DNA from: Salpingoeca rosetta
Lineage: Eukaryota; Protista; Choanoflagellata
Assembly: GCA_033442325.1 (NCBI GenBank)
Contig: JAWQFM010000018.1
Coordinates: 918,996-982,995 of the forward strand
Reading direction: 5' to 3'
Length of the DNA stretch: 64,000 nucleotides
A model generated the notes under the pieces. That model was not told the origin of the DNA. It was given only the letters and a program-made list of their open reading frames with translations, and searched no databases. Of this stretch, positions 54 through 36,372 are shown one piece after another (the stretch's first letter is position 1; every line of letters begins with the position of its first letter). The translations under genes were made by a program, and so were the position numbers.

Positions 54-336
54 TCACCATCGCCATCATCAGTGAGGTAGAGGAGGGCTGGCCCAGTTTC
101 GTTTAATGGCCAAAACTGAAATAACCAAACAGGGCGGAGTCAGGTCACATGAGAGCAACACAAGCGAAGCAAGAACTCGCTTCGGACGTGCACACACACA
201 CACACATACACACACATACACACACATACATTCACATACATTCACACACATTCACATACATTCACATACACACACATACACACACATACATTCACATACA
301 CACACATACACACACATAGTGTGTGCGTGCGTGGGT

Positions 337-9243
<8,907 letters not shown>

Positions 9244-11823: not shown

Positions 11824-12783
11824 TTACGACATGGTGCCAAAGACTGGGTTGTGTCGGCAGATGGAGGGGCCATACTCCTCGTAGTCGGCCTTGGTGTGGC
11901 ACACCTTGTAGAACTCGGGCTGGAGTGTGTGCGTGTGTAAGGGTGGAGTGAGTGAGATGCAGGCTTGCGCGCAACTGCAAGGACACAAACAACGGATGAC
12001 CGGCACTGGCGACGCTACACGCTCACCATGACCCCCCAATCATCGCCACAACGCCACAACACATACACACAACACATAGCACACGCACACAACACATAGC
12101 ACACGCACACACTACAGTGAAGCCGTATGACTTACGGTGGCAGCGAGCATGGAGCCGCCAAACCAGACGGCGTAGCGCTGCATGGCGTGCGAGACAACCT
12201 TCACCTCGATCGGCTGGGGCTGTTGGTGTCCGTCGAGCACAACAGTCGTTTGTAAATAGGAAAAGGAGGGTCAAAGGATGGTGGAGAGATTGCGTGAGCA
12301 AAGCAGCGCAGTGGCCATTGGAACACACACAAACTGCGAAGCACAAACGCGACACGGCACAAAACGCCAACGAAAGGAACCCGAAACACCACAGCAAAGA
12401 CAGCAAAGACAACAAAGACGGGATTGGGACCTTGAGCTTGCCGCCGGAGAGCTCCTCGCTGCGCTTGAGGCGGAGGTCGACGCGCTTCTGCACATCGCGC
12501 TCCAGACGGCGGCGGAAGTCCTTGAACATCGTCGAGCCGCCAGACAGCACAACATTCTGCACATTGGTTTGGGGCAAGAGAAGAGGGGAGGGGAGATGAG
12601 AGTGTTGTAGGTTGGGTAGGTTGGGCACATTGGGAAGGTGCGGGATCGATTTGAGGATGGTGACACAATGGAAAGAAAGCAAAGCAAACCTGAAACAATA
12701 TCCTCTCATCCAATGAACAACAAACACGCCACGCACGCACTATCCGTCCTCCAACGGGAGTCACCCCCGTTTTATCATCACCA

Positions 12784-12859
<76 letters not shown>

Positions 12860-14892
12860 CAACCACCACCTCCACCACCACCACCACCACCACCACCACC
12901 AGCAGCACCAGCAGCACTATTCCTACAACCAAGCAGCGCACCTTGTAGAGGCCGCGGCGGACGTCGATGGGCGACTGCTGCACGACCGTGTCCACGGTCT
13001 CGGAGATGGAGGTCTTGAAGTCCGGGTTGGCAAACTCGGGGTGGAAGAAAATCTCGGGCCCGAGGAAGCGCTCGTAGCCAACGTCGACGGAGAAGGGCTT
13101 CTTCGTGACCCTGTTGTGGCCCGTGTACTGCTTAAAGTACTTGTCGGGCTGCTTGTCGTACTTCTCAAACTCCTTGACAATGTCTGGGCAGACATATGTG
13201 TAGCGCTCCTTGATGCGCTTGGCAACCTCGAGCGACTGCTCGGGCGGGATGCCAACCTCGCGCTCGCGGAGCAGCTGCTGCACGAAGTATGTGATGTCGC
13301 GGCCAGCAATCGGGATGTGCTTGATGCAGCTGCCAATCACATACCCCTCGGCCTGCGCGCGCGCGCGTGTGTGTGTGTGCGTGTGCGTGTGTGTGTTGGG
13401 GTGACGGAGAAAGGAGTGGGTTTTGACGTGAGAACAGGTCAACGTTGGATGAGGTGTGCGCAAGGTCGTGTCAAACAAGATGCATGCGAGGGTACGCACA
13501 CACGACCAAGATGTCACCTTCAGATACACACAATGCAAGCACACGAGCAGGCACGCTCGCGCGCGCACACACACGCACGCGCACATGCTTACATGCACAC
13601 ATGCACACATGCACAACACGCACGCTCTCTCTTTCGTGTGAACGCACCACTGGGATGACGTGGGTGACACCGTCACCAGAGTCGATGACGCAGCCGGTGA
13701 GGGTGCGCTCGGCCTTCTTCGACGTCCACGACGCCGCAAGGGCAAGCACGGCCTGCACCGCAATGTACATGCCAGGGACGTTGAACGACTCGAACATAAT
13801 CTCGGCAAGGTACTCGCGGTTCTCGGGCGGGTTCAGTGGCGGCTCCGTGAGCAGGAAGTAGTGGTCCTCAGGCTCCGCACGCAGGTACTTGAAGATGGCC
13901 TGCTCGTAGAACTTCTCCTGTACAAAACCACCAAGCACACAGAGCAGAGATGTGTGTGTGTGGAGGGGAAACGAGCGATGTGAGTGCAAGCGTGTCGACC
14001 GTGGACATGATTGTCACAGGCGCTTGCAGGTCGACGCACGCACACGCACATACACGCGAGCAAGCGCATGCATGCAAGAGGAAGAGATAAGAGTGCACGC
14101 AGTCGCGAGCTCCAGCCGGCCGGGGGGGGGGCGACTGACCATGAGATCCCAGTCCTCGACAATGCCGTGGCGGACAGGGTACTTTGTGGCATACCCGGGT
14201 GTGTTCATGGCCTCATCGCCAATGTAGAAGTCTGCCCCATTCAAGCAAGGGGTTGCAATTTGCAATTGAGCACGCGGGTCGGCAAACAAGGGGCAGAAGC
14301 GCATGGATGGGCGGCGGCTGCTAACAAAGGCATGCACATACACAAAAAAATGCGCATGCATCACGGCACACACAAACGCGCATGCATCACGGCACATACC
14401 GAGGTCGTCGACGCCCTGTGCCATGCCACGCCCGACGTTCTCCTTCACTCCAATGGCTGCAAAAAGGCACGAACAAAAAAAAGTACAGTGTGAGACTTTC
14501 GCGAGACGCACGTCATCAAAAGACACTGTGGCGCGCCGACGCCGCTGTTGGAGCTTGACTCTCCCAGCAAGCGAGCACACACACTCACTGACACACGCGC
14601 TGAATCCAAACACACGCGCGGCACATCCAAACACACGCACGGTGAATCCAAGCACCCTCACACACACACACACACGCACGCACGCACGCACGCACGCACG
14701 CGCGCACACACATAAAATCCCTCCCGCCTCGTACACACACACGCACTCTCCCCCCCCCCAAACTCAACCTCTTCACCCATGCACGCGCGCACCAGAGGGG
14801 AAGATGTAGGAGGGCTCCGAGTTGCCGGCAAAGCCCATCTTTGTGTAGCCAGTGCCAACATCGATGACACAGGCTGGCATTTTGCTCGCCAT
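11824..14892 (-). CDS. ACTR3: Actin-related protein 3 (Arp2/3 complex), 8 coding exons
   Basis: [24 protein letters not shown].., [75 protein letters not shown], and C-terminal [25 protein letters not shown] are diagnostic of Arp3. GT-AG junctions are in phase. Confidence 0.97.
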
Positions 14893-18981: not shown

Positions 18982-19560
18982 ATCAAATGCGGGAACGCAA
19001 AGCGAAGAGAAAGGACAAGGCGCGCAATGCAAGGGCATAAACTTGTCTTGTTTGCTCACCAGCCCAGCGCCGAGGTAGTCCGGGCCAGGATTGACCTCAA
19101 TCATGCGGATCTGATTGAAACACACACATGCACACGATTGCGGTTGTGCGGGTGTGTGAGGTAACGAAACCAGCTGGCCAGAGCAGTGTGACATCCAGTA
19201 CAGTCGGGGGGATGTCAATAACCAACACACGGCAGGGGCTCGAAGAGGGCAAGTACATTGTGTGTGGTGGACGCGTTACCTCGGCGTCGATGGCTGGTGG
19301 ACCAAAGGCGCAGATGTGAAACGCAACCGTGTAGATGTCTTCGCCAGCCTTGTCATTGAGGGACAGCACAACCTGCTGCACCGTGGTGTTGTCAACCGTC
19401 GAAGCCTCCACGTTGACATATGCCAGATCATCCAGCGGCGTGCCCCAGCTGCTCAAAGAAAGCAAGGGTGTGAACAGAAGAAAGGTTGAGCTCTGACAAT
19501 CGCCGGTGCAACCACAAACGGTGCACGTGCTCGCACACAAACACACACAAACACACACAA

Positions 19561-19593
<33 letters not shown>

Positions 19594-20474
19594 AACACAC
19601 ACACATACACGCACGCACGCACGCACACGGACACGCGCGTGCTGACGGCTGCTTACCCTGTGTATTGGTCTGTGTCGCTGATGGTGAACGGGAAGCGCAT
19701 GGAGCGCTCGTCAACGATCGCATCATCGGAGAAGATGCATGTGTCTTGCATGTCCATTGTGTATTCGATGGCCGCCTCCATGTTGCGGTGTACCGTGAAG
19801 CCAACGGCCTCCACGGGTTTCTTCAGGTGCACCTGTCATCGTACGTGGGTAGAACGTCACAGGGTAGCGACAACACCCCTTCGTCAGTATCAGGTTGGCA
19901 TCGGCGTGCATCACATTGCATGTATGTGCATGCAGAGGCAAGGCAACAACACACACATACACACACATACACACACATACACACACATACACACACTCAC
20001 ACTCACACAAACACACACACACACACAAAACACACATCTCACTCTCACTCACTAACACACTCACTCACTCACTCACTCACTCACATACACACACTCACAC
20101 TCACACAAACACACACACACACGCACGACATACATCAGAGACTTGGATTGTGATTGACCCTCCTTGCAAGAGGCCAAACGAGGAGATGATAAAGTAACGA
20201 CGGCTCTCATCCTTCAGCTCCAGATGGTGGATGCGAGCGTTCACTACTCCATGTTGATGGCACAAGACAAGCAACAGCAGGGCAGACAGAAGATGATGTG
20301 GCGAGGGTATGTGAGCAGATGCGGAGACTGTGCATTGTACGTTGTACGTTAGACGCACACGCACACGCACACGCACACGCACGCACGCACGCACGCACAC
20401 AGGGAGCAGACCCACGCACCTGGCGTGGCGAGCAGAGCGGCGACGAGCATCGCCGCTAACGCCAACACCTTCAT
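15636..20474 (-). CDS. GPR107: Lung seven-transmembrane receptor family (GOST) protein, GPR107/GPR108-like, multi-exon
   Basis: Signal peptide MKVLALAAMLVAALLATP spliced to VNARIHHLELKDESRRYFIISSFGLLQGG. Family motifs: IEVNPGPDYLGAG, YKIHYMMLALVCFK, GMLLFLTVLLVGVGYGFIKRVLSSKEKRLFMIVLPLQV, IDLICCGAILFPIVWSIDHLQ, LQKLRLFRRFYV..GYIY, TRIIIY..TVPFRYRW. The last small exon (RDAD*, stop 15636) is inferred. Confidence 0.88.
16076..16190. repeat. 18-bp minisatellite (cactcacgaacacatgca), ~6 copies, intronic
   Basis: Directly visible in a GPR107-like intron. Confidence 0.9.
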
Positions 20475-20660
20475 CCACACAGTCGTCATCGTCAGCGGTT
20501 TGCGTTGGTGGTGGTGGAGAAACGAAAATAGAGGATGTGAAGCCGACGCCATAAACAGTAGCGTCAGGCAGGACTGTGTGTGTGTGTGTGTCTGTGTGTG
20601 TGTGTGTCTGTGTGTGTGTGTGTGTGTCTGTGTGTGTGTGTGTGTCTGTGTGTGTGTGTG

Positions 20661-20701
<41 letters not shown>

Positions 20702-21053
20702 TCTGTCTGTCTGTGTTTTGATTCATCAAGGCGCATCATCAGCCACACCACACGTTTTACACTACACAGCCGACACGGGTGCACGATAGCACGATTACGG
20801 TGGCACTTTCATTTGCGTTCTCACACCCCCACTTGTGTTTGTGGCTGGCTGCGGCTGCGCGTTCGCATGACGCTGTAATCAGGAATAACGGGTCTAACGG
20901 CCAGGCACGCATGCACCAAACACAAAGCAAGCAAAAGAAACGCAAACACACACGGAACAAAACCACAAGGGTACACAAAAGCAATGCATGAAGATAAGCA
21001 CAAAGGAACAACGTGGAAGAAAACGCGCGCGCACACACAATACCAACATGTCG

Positions 21054-22581
21054 TTAGAGCACACTGCAGCAGCCACCAGAGTCATTTGTCCGAGAAGCGG
21101 GAACAGGAGAACTTTGAGGCGATGAATCTTGACCGCTCTCAGCACGACTGCGAATGCGCTGCAAGGTACGCTCCGCCATGCGTGTGTGGGGGTGGTCTGG
21201 CCCAAGTGCGACTGTGAAAATGTCAAGCGCCTGTTGCATGTAGGCTAAGGCCTGCTCCTTCTCGCCGCAGGTGTCGTGTAGCAGGGCAATGTTGAAGTAA
21301 GACGATGCTGTGCCCCGGTGCTTCTCCCCAAGCGTCTTCAACTTGATGCCGAGGGCCGTCTTGTAATGCTGGATGGCCTTGCCATACTCGCCTTTGCTCT
21401 TAAAGGCAATGCCGAGGTTGCCGTAAGTACTCGCCGTGCTCGAGTGTTGTTCGCCCAGCGCCTCCACCTTGATGGCAAGGGCCTTCTCATACAGCTCAAT
21501 CGCTTTGTCATACTCGCCCTTGTGGCGGTATGCTTCGCCGAGGTTGTTGTAAGTACCCGCTGTTTTCGGGTGCTTCTCCCCAAGTGTCTCCATCGTGATG
21601 GCGAGGTCCTTCTCATAATATGAAATCGCCTTGTCGTATTCGCCCTTGTTGTCGTAGGCAAGGCCGAGGTTGTTGTAGGTGTCTGCCGTGCTCTGATGCT
21701 TCTCGCCTAGTAAGGCGACCTTGATTTCGAGGCTCTTCTCGTGGCACGCAATCGCCTTGTCATCGTCGCCCTTGCTGTGGTAGGCACTGCCGAGGTTGTT
21801 GTATGTTTGAGCTGTGCTGGTGTCCTTCTCGCCCAGCGTCTCCACCCTGATCGCGAGGCCCTTCTCATAATATGAAATCGCCTTATCGTACTCGCCCTTG
21901 CTGTGGTAGGCGCCGCCGAGGTTGTTGTACAGGGCAGCCACGTTCCCTCCTTTTCCCCCTTCAGTGCGCAGCCGAATCGCCAAGGCTGTTTTGTAGTGGG
22001 CAATGGCCTTGTCGTGCTCGCCAAAGTCGTCCAGTACGAGACCGACTTGATGGCACAACGTGGCAAACGTCTCTGTCCCATCGTCACCGCGTGCCCGCAT
22101 GGCGTCCGCTGCAGCCACCGCCTTCTCCAGGCACCACTCGCGCAGCTGGTCCTTCACAGCCTGGTTGAGAGCCGCAAAGCCAGCGCCGTGCTGGATGGCC
22201 TCGAAGATCATGTCCTTGTCGCGCGGGTTGAAGGCCTCTGCCCGCTCTGCCTGCACGCGCACCAAGGTATCGGTCACTGCCTCGTAGTTGTCGCGGATGG
22301 CCTCTTCCAGCGCCTTCTCCTCGCTGTTGGGCAGGCGGATGTTGACCTCTGTGCCCTCGTTGCTGATGCCGCAGAAGATCTCCCACAGGCACCACGCGCG
22401 TGTGAGTGGCACGGGGTCACGCCACGGCATGAGCACCAGCAGCACGCGCCCAATGTTGGCAATCGACTCCTTGAACGTCGTGCTCCACCTGATATGGGGG
22501 GGGGTGTTGTGGTGTGGAGGGAGGTGGGAGAGGAGAAAGGCATGTGAGGAAGTGGGGGTGTGAGCGAGATTATGGAGGTAC

Positions 22582-22618
<37 letters not shown>

Positions 22619-23137
22619 CCGCAAACACGCAAACACGGAGGCACTCACACACACAGGCACACACAGACACACACACACAGACACACACACAGACACACAC
22701 ACAGACACACACACACACACACACACACAAACAACGCACCACTCTTGTGGGAGGTTGGCCGTGACATTGGCGTTTTGGTTGTTCATGAAGAGGTCAAACC
22801 AGAAGAACACTGGCTGGCTGTCTTCCTTCCTTGCTCTTTGCTCCTCTGCAAACTCGAGCAAGACGGTCAACACGTCTGCGATCTTGTATCGCCACGCGTG
22901 CGACACAAACACAGTGGCTTTGCCCACATGTTCATGTGGCGACTGTTTGCGCAAGAGATCGACGTAGGCGCAGTTGTCTTGTTGTGTGCGTGGCACCACA
23001 AGCTGTTTGCAGGCATCCTCCGTCGTCATCTCAGTGTACGTGTCGGGGAACTTCTTCTTCAGGTCTGCGAGGAATGCCTTGATCGCCTCCACAGACACGC
23101 CGTCCGTCAGGCGGAGCTCGGTGTCATCGTTGGCCAT
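21054..23137 (-). CDS. TIR/HET-like N-terminal domain + seven 42-aa TPR repeats + C-terminal CaaX (about 610 aa, 2 exons)
   Basis: Exons 23137-22740 and 22488-21054 join in phase (QEW|WSTTF). Kinesin-light-chain-type TPRs TAxTYNNLGxAYxxKGEYDKAIxxYEKxLAIxxxxLGEKH. Ends GGCCSVL*. Confidence 0.9.
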
Positions 23138-23368
23138 CGTTCTTTGGGGCGAAGCTGCGACGACGGAAGAAACGAAGTTGGAGGGGGGGGGGGCGGGAAA
23201 CGAAATCGAGGAGTCGAGGGGCGTCTACCGAGCAAGCGCGATATTTGTGGTTGTTCTGCAACCTCAACAGCAAAGCGCCCCAAATTATTGTCCCGCCCCA
23301 GGAAAATCCGCCAGGCGTTCTTTCATCCGCCAAGGATTCGAACACAGTGAGTAAGCTGTTGTGTGTGT

Positions 23369-23402
<34 letters not shown>

Positions 23403-24611
23403 CTGTGTGTGTGTGTGTGTGTCTGTGTGTGTCTGTGTGTGTCTGTGTGTGTCTGTGTGTGTCTGTGTGTGCTGTCTGTGTGTGTGTGTGTCTGTGTGTG
23501 TCAGTGTGTGTGCATTGAAGCACTCTTCTACTCTTCGCCATGCTACCATGCATCCTCAACATGGCAACGAGCCATGTGCTCATGTGGATGGAAGGACGGA
23601 AAAAGGGAAAAGATGGGAACACCCATTCACTCATTCACTGTCGTTGAGGAGTCCTCAAATTGTTGATGTCAGTATCCTTCTGCTCATCTTCGTGTTGGAA
23701 GATCTGGGAGTCTCATCGTCACTGTGTCAGCACCACGCACAGACACCGTTCCATCCTGGTCTTGGTGATTGGCGTCAACATGCCAACGCACGCACTCACG
23801 CGTGACCCGTGGCAACCCCTCTTCCGTACACTCGTGCTCGATTGGACTAGTCTGCTCCCGGCTGAAGCTTTCCTCTTCTGTGTCCGCTCTTCTCCTCTAT
23901 GTAGTTATTCTCCAGCAATTATCGGGTAGGTTCACTCGTTCACGAACACTTGTTCGCTTGTTCTTCTGTCTTCCCCACTCACCTTCCCTTCTTCCTCTTC
24001 GATCATTAAGTCATTATTGCCCTGTGTTCAAGTGTTCATTCTATCGTGTACACCAGCAAGGCAACCAAAGCCAACGCACGTGCCAAGATAACACATGTTC
24101 TGGGATGCATACAGACAGCATTACGCATGCTCTCTCACTCAAGCAAGCACAATCGAGTCAACTGCAGTTCTCTTCACTCCACACGGCCACAATCAAGAGA
24201 AGACAATCACTAGACCCTTAGATCCCTCACCATCGTGCAAGCGACAGCGATGACACTCTCCTACTCTTTCTTGTATGCTACACATGCCTGTATGCACATG
24301 CCCACAGGCACATCCTCTTGTCACGAGGTAACGTCCAGGTCCACACCCCCCCCCCCACGAGAGGAGGCAGTTCTCTTCTAGATCTAGAGTTCTTCACGCC
24401 ACGACCCTACGACCGCTTCACCACTGCTGTCCTTCCTCCTTGCAACAAAGCAACAAGTTGTGGGAAAGGTGCAACAGCAGAGCATTCATTGAAATCATTC
24501 GCAAATTGTCCCATCGCCACACACAAAACAACAACAAGCAACAAGCAACAACGCCCACCACCCCCACCAACTTCGACACACCACAACACAACAAGACAAC
24601 ACCACAGCACC

Positions 24612-25691
24612 ATGTCGGGCACGATGACACGGCGAGAGGCCATGATGGCCGACTGGGATCTGCGCGGTGCTCCCCGCAAACGCCAGCGCGAGCGAACAAA
24701 GGACATCATCAAGTATGGCGCCATTGGGGACTTTTTCGTGAGGCAAGTTTTGTCTGTGGTGAGGAAGTGAGAGACGAGGAGGGTGTTTTGGTGGGGGTTG
24801 GTTGTTGTGTGCGTGCATGTGCGTGTGTGTGTGTGTGTGCAGTCCGTTTCAAAATGCCCTCGTGGGTGCGGCGACGGGGATATATGTGTATGTGTATGTG
24901 TATGTGTATGTACGTGCGTGTGTGTAATGTGTGTATGCTGTGGGAGGTGCGTGTGTGCGCGCGTGTGTGTTCAATACGAAGGAGTTGTGTTCACGCTGTT
25001 GTCGCGCTTCCGCACACATGCTCACGTACACACATGCTCACACACATACATACACACACATGCTCACACATACTCACATGTACGTAATCATAATGATAGG
25101 GCGGTGGAGAGCCGGCCAGGGAGCTTGGCGTTGATTGTGAAAGTGGCAAAGAAGAAGAAGAAGAACTTCCTAATTGAACCACTGCCAGACTGGAGTGCAT
25201 TCGTGTTGGCCGGCCACCCGACGCATTTTGCATCCTTGCAGGACCTGCTCAACAACTTTGCCATGCGCGCCACTGCACCGATACCTGTCCGGCTCACCAG
25301 CATTTCGCCGTACGCGGGCGCCAAGCCACGCAAGAGTGCCGCCACGCTCAGCCAGGCGGTTCCCGGTTATGGCCGCAGGCCGCCCGTACGCTCGCCCAAC
25401 GGTGCCTCATATGGGCAGCAGCTGCAGGCTCTCGAACAGCTCGCCGCCCAGGGCACCCCCGAGGCCCAGCAGGCCGCAGAGGTGCGTTTTGTTTTGCATC
25501 ATGCCATACCTCGCCGTCACAATGCTGGTGGTGATGACGATTATGATTGTGGTTGCGGTGGCACACACACTCGCGGCCGGCCTTAATGTTCTTGCACTCA
25601 CACACACACACACACAACACACATACACACACCCACACACACCCACACCCACCCACACACACACACACACACACTCACACCCACCCACACA

Positions 25692-25772
<81 letters not shown>

Positions 25773-26737
25773 ACACACACACACAGAGACGAGAGACACG
25801 ACAACGGCACAGACACATACAACAACACACATGCGCGGGAAATGCAGAGCTACACAGAATGACAACCCAGCGGCACTGAATCACCTACGATACGCCCATG
25901 GCATACGCGGGTCCGGGCCATGAAGGTTTCCAGCAGTTGGTGCGGGCGCAGGGGGGCTGCTGGGGCGTGTGGCGGTGTACAAATGGGGGTTTATTGGCAA
26001 TGGCTTATGACACGAAGGGGACGTAGCCTGGTGACATGTTGGCTGAATATTCTTCAGAAGTCCTTGGGGAGGGCATACGACTACCCTTTCNNNNNNNNNN
26101 NNNNNNNNNNNNNNNNNNNNNNNNNNNNNNNNNNNNNNNNNNNNNNNNNNNNNNNNNNNNNNNNNNNNNNNNNNNNNNNNNNNNNNNNNNGTTACAGAAT
26201 TAGGTTAGCCTGGAGTGAACTGATAAAAAAAAAAAAAAGGATAAATGTATGAAGGTAACTGGTCGCATACGCTATAAATCAGCGTAGACCTCGGATGCAA
26301 CACAAAAAAAAAAAAAAAACAAGAGAGCTACGACGTAGTCGACAGAATGATGCCGGCACATCGCCCTGAACGATACCAAGAGACGCACGGAAAAAGATAT
26401 CACCTATAACGACCTAAAAGAAAAAAAAAAATGAACCTCCGTCAGGTGCGTAGCACACACCCACACACCCACACGCAACACACACACACACATACTGCAG
26501 GCCCAGTTTGAGCTGCTTCGCAAGCGATACGCCGTGCAGCAGGCGCGCGTCGAGGCCCTGGAGGTTGCCATCAGCGTGAGTGGTCCGATACTGTTATGGT
26601 CATGTGTGCGTACGCGTGTAAAGGCACTTTTTTCGGCAGTGTCATTCCACACGATGCAGTCATGCATCTCTTGTGCTGTAAACTGTTTGTTCTTCACAGT
26701 GTCGTGTCGCTAGAACTACACTCCCATCTCCCCCCTC

Positions 26738-26803
<66 letters not shown>

Positions 26804-27373
26804 GACGACAGCACGTGCGGAGCGGCGGTGACCCGGGTTCGCTGCAACACGTCATGTCGCACGTGGGCGGCAATGTTCCCGCCAATTCTCGCGGCGGCGT
26901 GCCCATTGCCCAGCCAGGCGACTCCATCTCGGGGGTCCTCAACATGCGTGGCCAGATTGAGCCGTATCCACGCAACAGACACCACCAGCAGCAACAGCGG
27001 GTAAGTTCACGAGTGTCGCTTGCATCTCTGTGCGTGTGCGTGTGCGTGTGCGTGTGCGTGTGTGCGTGAGATGTGAGCACTTGTTTACATCCCACTCCCC
27101 CACACCCACCCATGCACATTTGTGTACATGCGTGCGTGAGACCTCAACAACACCCTTCCTCGTTTTTCACGTTCCTCCTTGTACAGCTGTCTGCGGTGCC
27201 TGAATCGCCACAAGAGCGCCAGCAGCCCACACGCGGGCCGGCCCGCGGCAGTTTCGTCACCCCGCTCTGTACGTGCAGGGCGTGAGTGAGTGAGCGAGTG
27301 AGTCTGTGTGTGTGTCTGCCAGGGGTGCGATTGTTCTCGCGCTCACATTCGCTTTTTTGCACGCTTTTCTTTT

Positions 27374-31020: not shown

Positions 31021-34000
31021 TCAGTGCTCAACGACGACGTCCAAATCAGAAAGGCCAAGCCTTGAAGTCGGCTCGTGCATCGTATCATTGCCAGCATTAC
31101 CACCGTCCACTGCAGACACATCAGTACGACCGCTGCCGCTGTCGAGACCACCGACGAAACGGCGTGTCTGCGCGTTCACCACAGCACCAAGCTCATCGTT
31201 CACTTGCTCCGCGCGCTGCCGCATGCGTCGTTCCTGGCTGAGTTCACGCCGCAGGGTACGCTCCTCCGTCTTCTTGCGAAGCGTTGTCGATGCCTCATCG
31301 TGCATCTGTGACAGCTGCTCCTCCAACATGTGTTTGTCACGCTGGAGCGCCCGCAATTGTCGCTGCAACTCGTCAATCACCTCAGGCTGCACGCCAGTCG
31401 CGCTGCGCCCGTGCAAAGACGAAGACGCCCCCACAAACTGCTGTTGCTGTTGTTGGTGGTGGGTTGTGTCGGTTGTATCCCACATACGCAACAAGTTGTC
31501 GCCTCTTGCACGTTCGTAGTTCACATCCTCCTCCTTCTGCCGCAGCTGCTGCCGCAGCGCCTCCATCGTCGCCTTCTGCTCCATAACAATCGACCGCAGC
31601 TGCTCGTACGATGTGTACGTCATCTGCAGCTCGTGTGTCAGCGTGTCCTTCAACGCCCCCATCTCCTCCAGCCGCCGCAACAGCGCTTCCGTGTCCACCT
31701 GTGACCCCCGCGGCTGTTGACCGTCAAGCCCTTGCTGCTGCTGTTCCTTCTGTTGCTCGTCCCGTGCGCGCTTTGCCGATGCCTCTGCCTCCTGCACAAG
31801 CTGCTGCATGCGGTCATTCAGCTCTTGCACCCGCCGCTCCTTTGCCAGGTGCTCCTGCTCCAATTCTTCAAGCTTCGTCAGCGCCTGCGCGTGCTGCTCG
31901 CGCGCCTTCACCAGGTGCTCCTCGTGTGAGTGCAGCTGCGCCGTGAGCCGCGCAATCGTCTCGTACTCATCCACGCCAGCAAAGCTGCTGCTCCCCAGCC
32001 CGCCTGTCGCCGTCCTGTTGCCAGCAGTGACGTTTCCACCACCACCGCCCACTCTGGCCCCTGCCGTTGCTGCTGTTCGACGCAGCACGCGGACGCTCTC
32101 CCGCAACTCGTCAATCGTGCGATGGGCCGCCGTCAGCTCAGAGGTGCGCGTCTCCAGACGATGGCGAAGCTGCGTTGTCTCCTGCCGCAGCGTGTGCACG
32201 TCATCCTCAGCGCGGTGCAGCCGCGTAACAGTGTCCTTGTGCGACACGTTGCCCTTGACATGCTGCTGCTCACTCAGTTGCGCACGCTCACGCGCTTCCT
32301 TCTCCGCGCGGGCGATGCGCCTGTTCTCTGCCAGCAAGTCCTCCTCCCGCCGCCGCAGCCGCTCCACCTCTCGGGACAGCTCGTCAGCACGTCGGCGGTC
32401 CCCGGCGTGGGCGTCACCACCACCACCACCACCACCACCACCACCAAGCCCAGTTGCAGTGGCGGTGCCGGTGCGCAGGCGAGCCATGCTGCCACCCAAA
32501 TCACCTCCTGCTGCACTGCCAAGTCGCTTGTTCAGCCTGTCCACTTCTCGCTGCAGGGACTGCGCTCGCTCGCGCCACTCCACGCACTCCGCCTGCAGTG
32601 CATGCATCTCTCGCCTCAGGTCTGCCTGGCTGCGCTTGTCATCGCTCACCGTGCCCAGTGCATCGTCTCGCGCGCGTTCAACCACCTGCAACCTGTCCTC
32701 GGCCTCCGTCAGCTTCTGCCGCAGCTCAGCCACGCGCTCCTGCGCCGCCGCCGCCTCCTCCCTTGCCTGCGCCCGCTCTGCCTCGCGTTGCGCCTGGCTC
32801 TCCTCAAGCTCCTTCTTCAACCGCTTCACCTGCTGCGCGCTGCGGGCGGAATTGCCGCTCTCGGCCGTCAGCTTCCCCTGCGCCGCCGCCAGCTCGTGCT
32901 CCAGTGTCTCCTGGCGCGCAAGCGCGCGCTGGTGGGCCTCCTCCTTCACCTGCGCCTGGCCCTCAGCGCGTGCAAGCGCCTGCTGCGCCTGTGCAATCTC
33001 TTCCCCAAGCCGGCGCACCTTCTTCTCGAGCTCGCGCATGTCCCGCTCCCGGGCAGCTGTCGCCTCGTGCGCCTGCGAGATTTCGCGCTCGCGGTCCGCC
33101 ACCTCCGCTTGCAGGCCCTCCACACGCTCCTCAAGGCCAATCGCCTTCTGCTTGAGCGCCGTGTTGGTGCGCGTGAGGTTGGCAAGCTCAGCCTGCAACT
33201 GTGCCTCCACCTCCTGGTCAGCCGTCAGTCGTGTCTGGTCCGACTGCAGCAGCGCACGCGCCTCCTGCAGCTGCAGCTCCAAGTCCTTGGCTGCTTCCTC
33301 GTACAGGGATGCGTTGCGGCGTGCCTGTTGCAGTTCAATCTCCAGCCGCTCCACCTCCGCGCTGTCCTGTCGGTAGCGCTCAGCGTCAATGCGCGCTTGT
33401 TGCTCTTGCTCGCTCAGTGACAGCTGCAGTCGCTCGTATGCCTCCTCCAGCTGCCTGTACCGCCGCTCCGCCTGCTCTGCCGCCAACTGCGCCTGCTGCA
33501 CCGCGCCCTGCTCCTCTTCAAGCTGCTGCTCCGTGCGGCGGAGGGCGCCGGCCAGGCGGTCGTGGTCCTGCTTCAGGTCCTCCACCACATCCTCAAGCTC
33601 AGCAACGCGCGCGTCCGCCACCTGCTTGGCGCGAACAGCGGCGTCCCTGTCCCTGCGCGCTGCCCGCGTCTCCTCATGCACAGACACGGCAACCCGCCCG
33701 GCCTCCGACTGGGCAAGCGCCCGCTTGGACGAGCTCTCGAGTTGCGCAATCTCGTCCTCGGTGCGCTGGCGAAGACGGGCCAGGTCCTCCCGCATGGCCG
33801 CCTCGTCACGCTCCCGCTGCTCCGCCAGCCGCTTCTGGTGCTTGGCGCGCTCCTGCTGCAACGCTTCCTCCATGTCTGCGAGCGCGGCCTGCCTGTCGTC
33901 TTCGAGCCGCTGTTGAAGCTTCCGCAGGTCCTCCTCCATGGCGTGACGACGCGCTTCCATCTCTTCCCGCATCGCCTTCTCGTCCTCAGCAGCGCGGTCG

Positions 34001-36372
34001 CGCGCCTGCTGCCGTGTCCGCTCTGCGTCCTCCTTCGCTTGCTTGCGCGTCTCGCTCGCGTCGTGCTCCGCAGCCGCGCGTGCCTCCTGCAGCCGCTGCT
34101 CCGTCGCCTCCTCCAGCTCGCAAAGGGCACTGCGCTTACGCTCAAAGTCCGCGTCGGCCGCCTGTCGGCGCTCGTCAAGCTCGGCGTCGAGCCTGCTCAG
34201 CGCGTCCTGTCGCCGCCGTCGCACGTCCTCCTCCACCTCGCCCGCCTCGGCTCTCAGCCGCGCAATCTCCTCTTGCAAACGCGTCTTCTCCCGCTGCAGT
34301 GCATCCACTTCCTCCTGCAGGGCCCGCCTGCGCGCCTCCGCATCCCGCGCACCGTCCTCGGCCGCCTGCGTGCGGATGCTGTCTGCTTCGCTGCGGGCGT
34401 CACGCACCACCTGGCGTGCCTCCTGTGTTGCGCGCGATCGCACCTCTTCAGCCTCGTCCTCCGCCCTCTGTGCGGCTGTCGCTGCAAGCTGCTTGGCCAA
34501 GTCCGCATCGTGCTCTGCTGCCGTGCGCACGCGTTCTGCTTCGCGCTTGGCCTGTGCAAGCGCCTCCTCAGCGCGCTCCTGCGCCTGCCTTGCGTCCTGC
34601 TCCAGCTTTGCGCGGTGTGCACGTCGTGCCTCCTCCATCTCCTCCTCCTGCGCCTGCTGCCGCTGCTCTGCGTCCCGCCGTGCCTTGTCCCTCAGCGCCT
34701 TGGCTGCTCGCTCCGCCTCCTCCGTGATTGCTGCCGCTTCGTCACGCGCCCGGTCCCGCACCTGCTGCGCCTCTGTCTGCGCCTGTCGCTTGACCGCGTG
34801 TGCGTCGGCCTCTGCCTGCGTGCGCATCTTCTCTGCCTCGAGGGCGGCGCGTGCGCGACTTGCATCGCTCTCCACCATGGACCGCTCGGCCCTGTCAGCG
34901 CGGTCTCGCTCCTCGTGCTCCCGCGCGTGTGCCACGATCCGGTCCGCTTCGCTGCGCGCGTCATCAATGATGCGACGGCGCTCATCTTCGGCAATCGTGC
35001 GGATGTGGGCTGCCTCCTGCTCGGCAAGCGTCAGCCGCAGCTGCGCCTGTGTCAACAACATGCTGTCCACACCGCCAGCAACAGCACCGCTCGTGTTGGC
35101 GGTCGCCTGCCCGCTGCCTTGCTGCTGCTGCTGCTGCTGCTGTGATGACGATGTGTTGTGACCAGCAAAGGTGTCACTGCTTGCTCGCCGCTCCTCCAAG
35201 TCGCGCTGCAGCTGATCCAGGATCTGTTCACGCTGCTCGCGTGTCAGCATCACTGTTGACGACCCCGGCGACACGCCAGAGAGGCCCGAGCGAGAGCGGT
35301 GTACGCCCACGCCGCTGCCGCGATCGCCGCCACGACCAGGGATAGTGATGCCGCCAATGGCCTCGCCATCGTCTTCAAAGCGAACGTGCGAGCGCGAAGC
35401 AGCAGCAGCAGCAGCAGTGTCAGTGTCTTCATCAAGCCGGGTGGCATTGACGCTCCCACTCATCTCGTCTGATGTCTGCAGGTCTCGCAGCACCTGCGAC
35501 GCCGTGAACCGGTCATCACCCTCGCGTGAGAGGAACGACGATGCCAGCCGACCGAGCTCATCGTCCCGCTCCGCCAGGCGCGATGCGTTGGCCGTGTCCG
35601 CTGCAGCTGCGTTTGCCGCTTGCTCAAACTCGGCGTGAGCGGCAGCGACAATGGCCTCGTCATCATCGTGGTGCATGCCGCTGCCGCCACCACGGGCAGA
35701 GGTGTTGGCTGAGCGGTACGGTGACCGCTGCTGCTGCTGCTGCTGCTGTTGTTGTTGTTGTCTTTGGTGCTGACGCATGAGGGCGAGGCGAGGGTCGCGC
35801 ACACCGTTGAAGCTTGCGTCAGCATCGTCGGCATACACGTCGCCGTCATTATCGCCATCACCAAACCGCGTGCGGTTTTCAGAGAGGATGGAGTTGTACT
35901 CTGCACCGCGGAACGACAAGTCATCGTTCCGGTCCCACTGCGTCACGTTCGAGGCAGGATGGTGGCTGGCAGTGGTGGTGTTGTTGTAGTTGTTGTCGTT
36001 GTTGTTGTTGTTATTGTTGGTGGCGGTGGTGGTGCGGCCGTGACGGCGCGGGAGGACGATGGAGGGGTGTGCAGCCACGATACGTCGCGCCTTTGCACGG
36101 TACCGCAGGTGATGCGCAAGATCATCAAAGTCTGACGGGTTGGTGTTTGTGAGGGTGTTGAAAGAGGGAGGGGGATAAAGTGTGAGAACCGTACTCGGGG
36201 ATCTAGGCGCAATATGCGAAGAAGGTGGCTCGAAATGCGTGGACAGGCAGTGTGACGGACAGGCAGACGAAGGAAGAGGCTGACACACACACACATGAAC
36301 ACGTTGACATAAATCCGCACATATTCATGCACAGCAGCACACACGCACGCACACACGCACACACACACACAC

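Follow-up and report, generated by a model that had tools for sequence, protein, structure and literature searches.

In a 64,000-nucleotide stretch of the Salpingoeca rosetta genome (G000:C18:918996-982995; hereafter the window, whose positions serve as coordinates throughout), a two-exon gene on the minus strand encodes a 610-residue protein, P0001, in which an N-terminal domain that very probably belongs to the TIR superfamily is fused directly to an array of tetratricopeptide repeats (TPRs). The database knows it only as 'tetratricopeptide TPR_2 repeat protein [Salpingoeca rosetta]', which is the kind of annotation that a preliminary description of this DNA had expected. The best explanation overall is that such proteins combine a TIR-superfamily domain and TPRs and probably act as N-glycosidases on NAD+ or a closely related nucleotide.

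Cleavage of NAD+ by TIR domains is an executioner and signaling chemistry shared by bacterial, plant and animal immunity. In the closest unicellular relatives of animals, the known TIR complement consists of canonical TIRs only, and the family to which P0001 belongs, invisible to Pfam, has about 66 intact copies in S. rosetta compared with about 48 canonical TIR_2 matches. If active, these proteins would enlarge the eukaryotic repertoire of TIR enzymes, couple a TIR effector to a repeat sensor without a STAND (signal transduction ATPase with numerous domains) ATPase, and provide a tractable relative for the enigmatic fungal HET domain. S. rosetta can be both transfected and edited.

A TIR-like domain in front of a TPR array

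We modeled residues 1-275 of P0001 with AlphaFold2 from a 35-sequence alignment (predicted local distance difference test, pLDDT, 89.4; predicted template modeling score, pTM, 0.88) and the core, residues 68-268, from a 129-sequence alignment (pLDDT 93.3). From residue 76 onward, the order of strands and helices in the model matches the TIR scheme (Table 1). When the whole model was compared with the PDB by Foldseek, TIR domains ranked at the top with E values of only 0.009-0.1; with the core model, ranks 1-23 were all TIR domains, led by the RPP1 TIR (E 6.9e-4, probability 0.99). A scan of 48,161 chains with VIA-align, which is independent of Foldseek, placed TIRs in 10 of the 12 top rows (Z 6.9-5.9). 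The core model reached Z 7.8-7.2 with the TIRs of SARM1 (Z 7.8), RUN1, RPPT, MyD88, RPP1 and AbTir, 111-136 residues being aligned on domains of 131-170 residues, and TIR domains filled 46 of its 50 rows (Z 7.8-6.0). Nucleoside 2-deoxyribosyltransferases, MilB and DprA, which share the superfold, followed the TIRs at Z 4.8-6.6. These Z scores are moderate; what carries the assignment is that nearly all matches are TIRs and that the sequence evidence agrees. The TIR-like fold that had been anticipated from the letters is thus borne out by top matches of both programs that are almost all TIR domains, and the models are consistent with a divergent TIR whose core, βA to αE, lies at about residues 70-235, flanked by a helical extension on its N-terminal side and by a long connecting helix on its C-terminal side.

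Standard models do not pick up this domain. Neither the separate exons nor P0001:1-270 gave a credible Pfam match in residues 1-270, TIR and TIR_2 (PF01582 and PF13676) did not match P0001:1-270, and hits to HAM1_C, Xpo1 and HP1451_C (E 0.02-0.1) were dismissed as noise. The family profile found 0 matches at E ≤ 10 among all PDB sequences (hmmsearch), and the language-model look-alikes in named clusters of the ESM Atlas included no usable match. When 129 diverse members of the family (clusters at ≤50% identity) were scanned with Pfam, TIR_2 was the sole recurrent family, found in 20 of the 129 (best E 0.0025, all below threshold); the next family reached 3. A genome scan with TIR_2 returned 48 matches at other loci, 29 of them above the cut-off and none from the TIR-like-TPR family.

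A direct link to canonical TIRs came from hhalign, in which the family profile was set against a profile of 12 aligned canonical S. rosetta TIRs (P 3.5e-4 over 81 columns). The alignment pairs ATVFVSHAW with GTVFLSYTW in βA, WFDL with WMDI in βB, VLLVLMP with VVVSFVS in βC and AWCLWE with DYCRKE in αC. The last pairing puts E169 opposite the αC Glu, the one column that is nearly invariant in the canonical TIRs. E169 is therefore predicted to occupy the position of the catalytic Glu of TIRs (SARM1 E642, RUN1 E100), in agreement with the earlier reading of the motif WCLWE.

The four motifs on which that reading was founded are all present on the minus strand and in the proposed order, both in the sequence and in the spliced translation. 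They do lie within the stretch 22370-23137 to which the preliminary description had assigned them, but this stretch is not one open reading frame (ORF): the intron 22739-22489 parts the first two motifs from the last two. Nor does the domain end at 22370, as residues 1-268 are conserved in the family alignment as one unit of about 260 residues that extends to window position 22083. F77, H80, W82, D115, P158, R163, C166 and E169 are invariant in the 129 relatives, and the same set, E169 included, is invariant in the other family alignment. The conservation of the Glu that had been predicted for the paralogues holds in 65 of 66, and TRAWCLWE itself occurs in 60 of them, five near variants keeping R, W, C and E. 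Given the eight invariant residues and the recurrence of R-x-W-C-L-W-E in 65 of the 66 paralogous exons, we take the motif pattern to be far above chance.

Behind this domain, exon 2 matches TPR families only (TPR_12, 5e-82, 270.6 bits; TPR_10, 9e-64, 210.2 bits), and the NPHP3 TPR model (TPR_NPHP3) scores 100.1 bits against a cut-off of 100. With units of 42 residues and both PF13424 and PF13374 above threshold, the repeats are of the kinesin light chain (KLC)/NPHP3 type; six ungapped 42-residue repeats were recovered by a hidden Markov model, and a degenerate one brings the array to seven. Across 160 repeats from 31 S. rosetta paralogues the TPR scaffold is strongly conserved, and positions 3, 10, 13, 14, 23, 24 and 32 are hypervariable (2.6-3.5 bits, 11-17 residue types). 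After residue 270, Pfam finds TPR-type families only in P0001, and neither NACHT nor NB-ARC; a Walker A motif was looked for in the protein and not found. In the AlphaFold2 model, helix 237-265 runs straight into the first TPR, with no nucleoside triphosphatase (NTPase) module between them. The direct fusion to TPRs without NACHT or NB-ARC, which had been proposed at the outset, thus stands: a TPR_12/TPR_10 array is all that follows the domain.

The C-terminal GGCCSVL combines a di-cysteine with a CaaX box, and CCSVL is a probable prenylation and palmitoylation membrane anchor. A CC-aaX end also occurs in the paralogues P0004, P0007, P0009, P0010, P0025 and P0031. More generally, the S. rosetta paralogues (P0002-P0031) have at their C-terminus a CC-aaX box, a PH domain or a hydrophobic tail rich in Cys (LCCPCLVAALPFLCIY...). 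Such ends suggest, from their motifs, that the family is generally membrane-targeted, and it appears to use interchangeable membrane-targeting modules.

Paralogues, relatives and gene model

When the part of the domain encoded by exon 2 was used in a word-based search, it returned 53 relatives, mostly S. rosetta paralogues; the others come from Monosiga brevicollis, EukProt transcriptomes and metagenomes, and annotations mention only TPR or PH. We scored 1.84 billion cluster representatives against a profile built from 35 domains, which matched 10,931 proteins at E ≤ 1e-3, 6,429 at E ≤ 1e-10 and 2,527 at E ≤ 1e-30. A chytrid fungus and a centrohelid are among the members with a named source, and structural neighbors in the ESM Atlas come from oomycetes, haptophytes and chlorophytes, with fusions to DUF285, methyltransferase and HNOB domains. 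Motif and tblastn scans of GTDB (one genome per species) and IMG/VR returned no relative, although these scans are pattern-based and do not prove absence. With more than 10,000 clusters at 50% identity in global protein collections, the family is apparently confined to eukaryotes. TPR_12 is present in 67 of 79 diverse full-length representatives, and NACHT and NB-ARC are not among their 25 commonest families. Some metagenomic relatives (P0054, with 1239 residues and 3 matched stretches, and P0055-P0063) carry two or three tandem TIR-like domains interleaved with TPR arrays, which could be real or could result from gene-model fusion.

In the S. rosetta genome, 129 exon pieces match the profile, and 66 of these are second-exon pieces, all of them (66/66) without a stop. 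Nearly all genomic matches break at one profile position, which points to a conserved intron; exon-by-exon matches place it at profile position ~130/131 in nearly all paralogues. One paralogue (G000:C5:523694-524362) covers profile positions 34-262 in a single open piece without this intron and may have arisen by retrocopying or by loss of the intron. The sole paralogue of the 66 without the Glu, L076 (G000:C5:2281620-2282045), has FQNAQCLWD in place of LTRAWCLWE, so that R163, W165 and E169 are lost in an open frame; this copy may be degenerate, regulatory or a decoy. We estimated nonsynonymous (dN) and synonymous (dS) divergence by the Nei-Gojobori method on 49 gap-free copies and 120 codons. 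Paralogue pairs have a median dN of 0.29, dS of 0.90 and omega of 0.31, and no pair exceeds 1. A low omega at a dS of 0.90 indicates that the copies are old and constrained, and the paralogues are under purifying selection.

The gene for P0001 was read from the ORF listing and the minus strand as two exons, 23137-22740 and 22488-21054. The two coding blocks are parted by (GT)n-rich DNA, in which the GT of the donor site follows 22740 and the AG of the acceptor site precedes 22488. The splice joins ...NLPQEW to WSTTFKES... in frame, and the spliced translation is identical to the database protein. The features of the gene and of its N-terminal domain are collected in Table 1.

Table 1. Features of the TIR-like-TPR gene and secondary structure of its N-terminal domain (positions in the window; residues of P0001)
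Feature	Window positions	Strand	Residues	Content	Basis
Exon 1	22740-23137	-	1-132 plus 2 nt	start codon 23137-23135; N-terminal helical extension (1-67), βA VFVSHAW, βB FFWFDLFMNNQ; spliced product is P0001	
Intron	22489-22739	-		251 nt, GT..AG, mostly (GT)n microsatellite	sequence reading
Exon 2, first part	22083-22488	-	133-268	second half of TIR-like domain: βC VLLVL, αC PLTRAWCLWEI, βD, αD, αE, long connecting helix	models, TIR matches, E169 alignment
TPR array	21147-22073	-	~272-580	seven 42-residue KLC/NPHP3-type repeats	Pfam
C-terminal tail	21054-21146	-		Ser/Pro-rich, ending GGCCSVL; CSVL 21068-21057, stop codon 21056-21054	
Motif VFVSHAW	22912-22892	-	76-82		
Motif FFWFDLFMNNQ	22807-22775	-	111-121	invariant D115 at 22795-22793	
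Motif VLLVL	22448-22434	-	147-151		
Motif PLTRAWCLWEI	22409-22377	-	160-170	putative catalytic E169 at 22382-22380	
βA			76-79		AlphaFold2 model
αA			86-103		AlphaFold2 model
βB			111-114	followed by BB-region helices	AlphaFold2 model
αB			131-145		AlphaFold2 model
βC			147-151		AlphaFold2 model
αC			164-175		AlphaFold2 model
βD			180-184	followed by αD helices	AlphaFold2 model
Short bridge			216		AlphaFold2 model
αE			221-233		AlphaFold2 model
Long helix			237-265	leads into the TPRs	AlphaFold2 model

Raw reads of stranded RNA-seq from two runs cover both exons at about 2-28x per bin (exon 1 at 2-22x per 70-nt bin). First mates lie almost exclusively on the plus strand, so the RNA derives from the minus strand, from which the gene is transcribed. 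Over the intron, RNA depth is 0 in bins 22524-22733, of which only 22524-22574 is informative since the repeats at 22575-22741 were skipped, whereas a DNA-like run has a contig over intronic 22496-22574. Skipping of the repetitive (GT)n intron leaves no splice-junction read, and the RNA reads support splicing of the intron only indirectly. They also carry alternative letters in a large share at 22431 (G>C), 22433 (G>A) and 22766 (A>G), the last change being present in DNA-like contigs too. These likely reflect cross-mapping of near-identical paralogues or strain differences and not editing.

Elsewhere in the window, neighboring ORFs (827-4795, 12204-13808 and 31024-36294, all on the minus strand) include a protein-tyrosine phosphatase (Y_phosphatase, 1e-57) and an actin-like ORF (1.8e-9). 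Several other long ORFs have no Pfam match at E ≤ 1e-5, among them one of 1757 residues in a stretch of 63-68% G+C, and nothing among the neighboring ORFs of the window suggests that the TIR-like gene sits in a functional gene cluster. (CA)n/(GT)n microsatellites crowd 19486-20800, 22489-22739, 23340-23560, 24900-25900 and 26700-27100, in intergenic and intronic DNA, where they give rise, on either strand, to long spurious ORFs with many C, V, T and H residues; the antisense of real exons is often open as well. A run of X in the ORF translation at 25920-26252 corresponds to a run of N, that is, an assembly gap, in the window.

Proposed activity and its alternatives

In SARM1, in plant and bacterial TIRs and in the recently described TeTIR domains, the αC Glu catalyzes cleavage of the nicotinamide-ribose bond of NAD(P)+. 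For P0001, an enzymatic activity, its substrate, control by the TPR array, anchorage at a membrane and any part in immunity or self/non-self recognition are inferred. We propose that P0001 is a cytosolic, probably lipid-anchored protein in which a ligand of the TPR array would gate activity through clustering or release of autoinhibition at the membrane. An E169-dependent N-glycosidase would then cleave NAD+ or a closely related nucleotide, the output being either NAD+ depletion or a nucleotide signal. For the Glu-dependent activity on NAD+ or a related nucleotide we would put the chances somewhat above even, and a role in conflict or recognition is put forward tentatively. A still wider reading makes the very large family a eukaryote-specific system free of a nucleotide-binding oligomerization domain (NOD), in which a HET-like TIR N-glycosidase, a hypervariable TPR sensor and a membrane anchor would form a main system of innate immunity or allorecognition in choanoflagellates and many other protists and a sequence bridge between HET and catalytic TIRs; taken as a whole, this seems doubtful to us.

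Several observations weigh against an enzymatic TIR. The Pfam TIR models stay below their gathering score (the best relative has 17.4 bits against a cut-off of 28), and hhalign assigns a probability of only 37%. The structural Z scores, at 6-8, fall within a range flagged as possibly reflecting a mere common arrangement, and the flavodoxin-like core is common to nucleoside 2-deoxyribosyltransferases and DprA, both of which are among the matches (Z 5-6.6). Many animal TIRs that keep the Glu are adaptors and not enzymes. A homodimer prediction for the core domain scored 0.01 and gave no verdict, speaking neither for nor against self-association. Finally, the neighboring genes are unremarkable.

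In one alternative, the domain is a TIR-like assembly or adaptor module without enzymatic activity that would cluster TPR scaffolds at membranes, homotypically or heterotypically, as the TIRs of MyD88, MAL and TLRs do, its conserved residues serving folding and interfaces. MyD88, MAL, TRIF, TRAM and IL-1R-family adaptor TIRs score as high as NAD+-cleaving TIRs in VIA-align, and some 66 paralogues make heterotypic TIR-TIR networks conceivable. However, the strict invariance of D115, R163, E169, H80 and C166 in the 129 relatives resembles an active site and not an interface, and the paralogue without the Glu has also lost R163 and W165, as expected from joint decay of a catalytic center. The homodimer prediction lends the adaptor no support, yet it holds no evidence against binding. 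We regard a purely scaffolding role as unlikely.

The domain might instead be an N-glycosidase or transferase of the same superfamily that acts not on NAD+ but on (deoxy)nucleotides, like DNPH1, MilB and the nucleoside 2-deoxyribosyltransferases, or on RNA or DNA, like the 2',3'-cNMP synthetase of plant TIRs. Besides the structural matches to nucleoside 2-deoxyribosyltransferases and MilB, the invariant D115 directly after βB would fit such an enzyme, as a possible counterpart of D80 of DNPH1. This second catalytic Asp of DNPH1 stands where the TeTIR domain has a Cys (10.64898/2026.09.21.753143). But TIR domains outrank those enzymes in every structure search, and TIR_2 is the only recurrent sequence signal, which leaves a substrate outside the NAD+ group improbable.

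That the TIR likeness is a coincidence of the flavodoxin-like sandwich, in a KLC-like housekeeping adaptor for cargo or trafficking whose N-terminal domain is unrelated to TIRs, would accommodate Z scores below 8, Foldseek E values of only ~1e-3, paralogues and relatives annotated 'kinesin light chain', and MIT and SNAP-like Pfam cross-matches in the TPR region, but it is very improbable given that the three-dimensional matches, the sub-threshold TIR_2 hits in 20/129 and the hhalign register converge on TIR and its catalytic Glu, and that ~66 copies are unexpected for a housekeeping adaptor.

We retain a probable TIR-superfamily N-glycosidase as the preferred reading. The initial proposal of an enzymatic TIR/HET effector on a TPR sensor survives in its TIR fold, its Glu and its direct TPR fusion; its HET half finds no match in Pfam.

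Comparison with known systems

The domain shares with catalytic TIRs (SARM1; plant RPP1, RUN1 and RPS4; bacterial ThsB, AbTir and the SPARTA TIR) the predicted βA-αE order and fold, the βC-αC '...WC.xE' motif with its Glu at the aligned position, and a place at the N-terminus before a repeat domain. In contrast to them, it stays below threshold for Pfam TIR, TIR_2 and ThsB_TIR, measures ~270 residues and not ~140, the surplus including a helical extension at the N-terminus and further helices, and has an invariant set of its own (F77, H80 and W82 after βA, D115 after βB, and R163 and C166 ahead of the Glu). It is also fused to TPRs without an ATPase, SAM, ARM or LRR (leucine-rich repeat) module.

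As to HET, the assignment does not hold by Pfam, whose HET model gave no match at E ≤ 10 for P0001:1-270 or 6 homologues and is absent from the 25-family list of the 129 relatives; a genome scan with it found no match either, but control genomes were silent too, so that scan is uninformative. Two canonical TIR_2 genes, L008 (G000:C34:55554-55769) and L010 (G000:C5:1602329-1602544), have HET-reminiscent motifs (VSYSWG..., CWIDIRNILPG and NCCIEL); as a HET bridge ('SYSWG...CWIDI') they were rejected, since Pfam matches TIR_2 and TIR only. Fungal HET domains carry the blocks S-[HY]-x-W, W-x-D-x(5)-Q and R-[GA]-W-x-L-x-E, a consensus also given as S-x-x-W, W-x-D-x-x-C-x-x-Q and R-G-W-x-x-Q-E, and their overexpression leads to cell death. 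On inspection, the SHAW, WFDLFMNNQ and RAWCLWE blocks of P0001 resemble these. A 'HET-like' label would draw on this motif resemblance and on one sentence in the literature (PMC4986451).

The fungal HET domain has been proposed as a remote relative of TIR (Dyrka et al. 2014, PMC4986451), and homologues have been reported in choanoflagellates, stramenopiles, haptophytes and green algae, with one S. rosetta sequence shown (PMC4986451). It spans ~220-240 residues (PMC12881547), and it has as yet neither a solved structure nor a demonstrated activity (PMC10197012, PMC12881547), so no mechanism can be borrowed from it. Fungal HET (PF06985; HET-E/D/R, TOL, PIN-C) and the TIR-like domain are alike in size and apparently in their three-block signature, the reported taxonomic spread of HET matches that of the TIR-like-TPR family, and both families have expanded to many copies per genome. 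Unlike in fungal HET proteins, the partner of the TIR-like domain is a TPR array without NACHT or NB-ARC.

A close parallel is offered by TeTIR, the extended TIR-like domain of TEP1, a Glu-dependent NADase that standard models miss, that always precedes a NACHT ATPase and that contains an RWG loop in its BB region (10.64898/2026.09.21.753143, a September 2026 preprint). TeTIR (TEP1, NWD1/2, TTC41 and NPHP3) and the domain described here are both extended (200-350 residues in TeTIR), with a conserved catalytic Glu, putative in the case of P0001, and the TeTIR proteins NPHP3 and TTC41 carry the same KLC-type TPRs as P0001. Unlike them, P0001 has no NACHT, NB-ARC or Walker A, nor an RWG between residues 115 and 147, that is, between βB and βC. 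After βB, the TIR-like domain has an invariant Asp and TeTIR a reported conserved Cys. Derivation of the TIR-like-TPR proteins from an NPHP3-like ancestor by loss of NACHT is offered as speculation only.

TIR-NBARC-TPR and HET-NACHT-TPR architectures are known (PMC9153377), but the literature that we searched describes no large eukaryotic family in which direct fusion of a TIR-like domain to TPRs is the dominant architecture. P0001, like its family as a whole, lacks the central NTPase that defines NOD-like receptors (NLRs) and other STAND receptors. Plant TNP/XTNX proteins (TIR-NBARC-TPR) and fungal HET/TIR-NACHT-TPR NLRs likewise join an N-terminal TIR-type effector to a C-terminal TPR array (PMC9153377), and the hypervariable positions within the conserved TPRs of the S. 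rosetta family resemble the repeats of fungal NLRs (PMC4986451).

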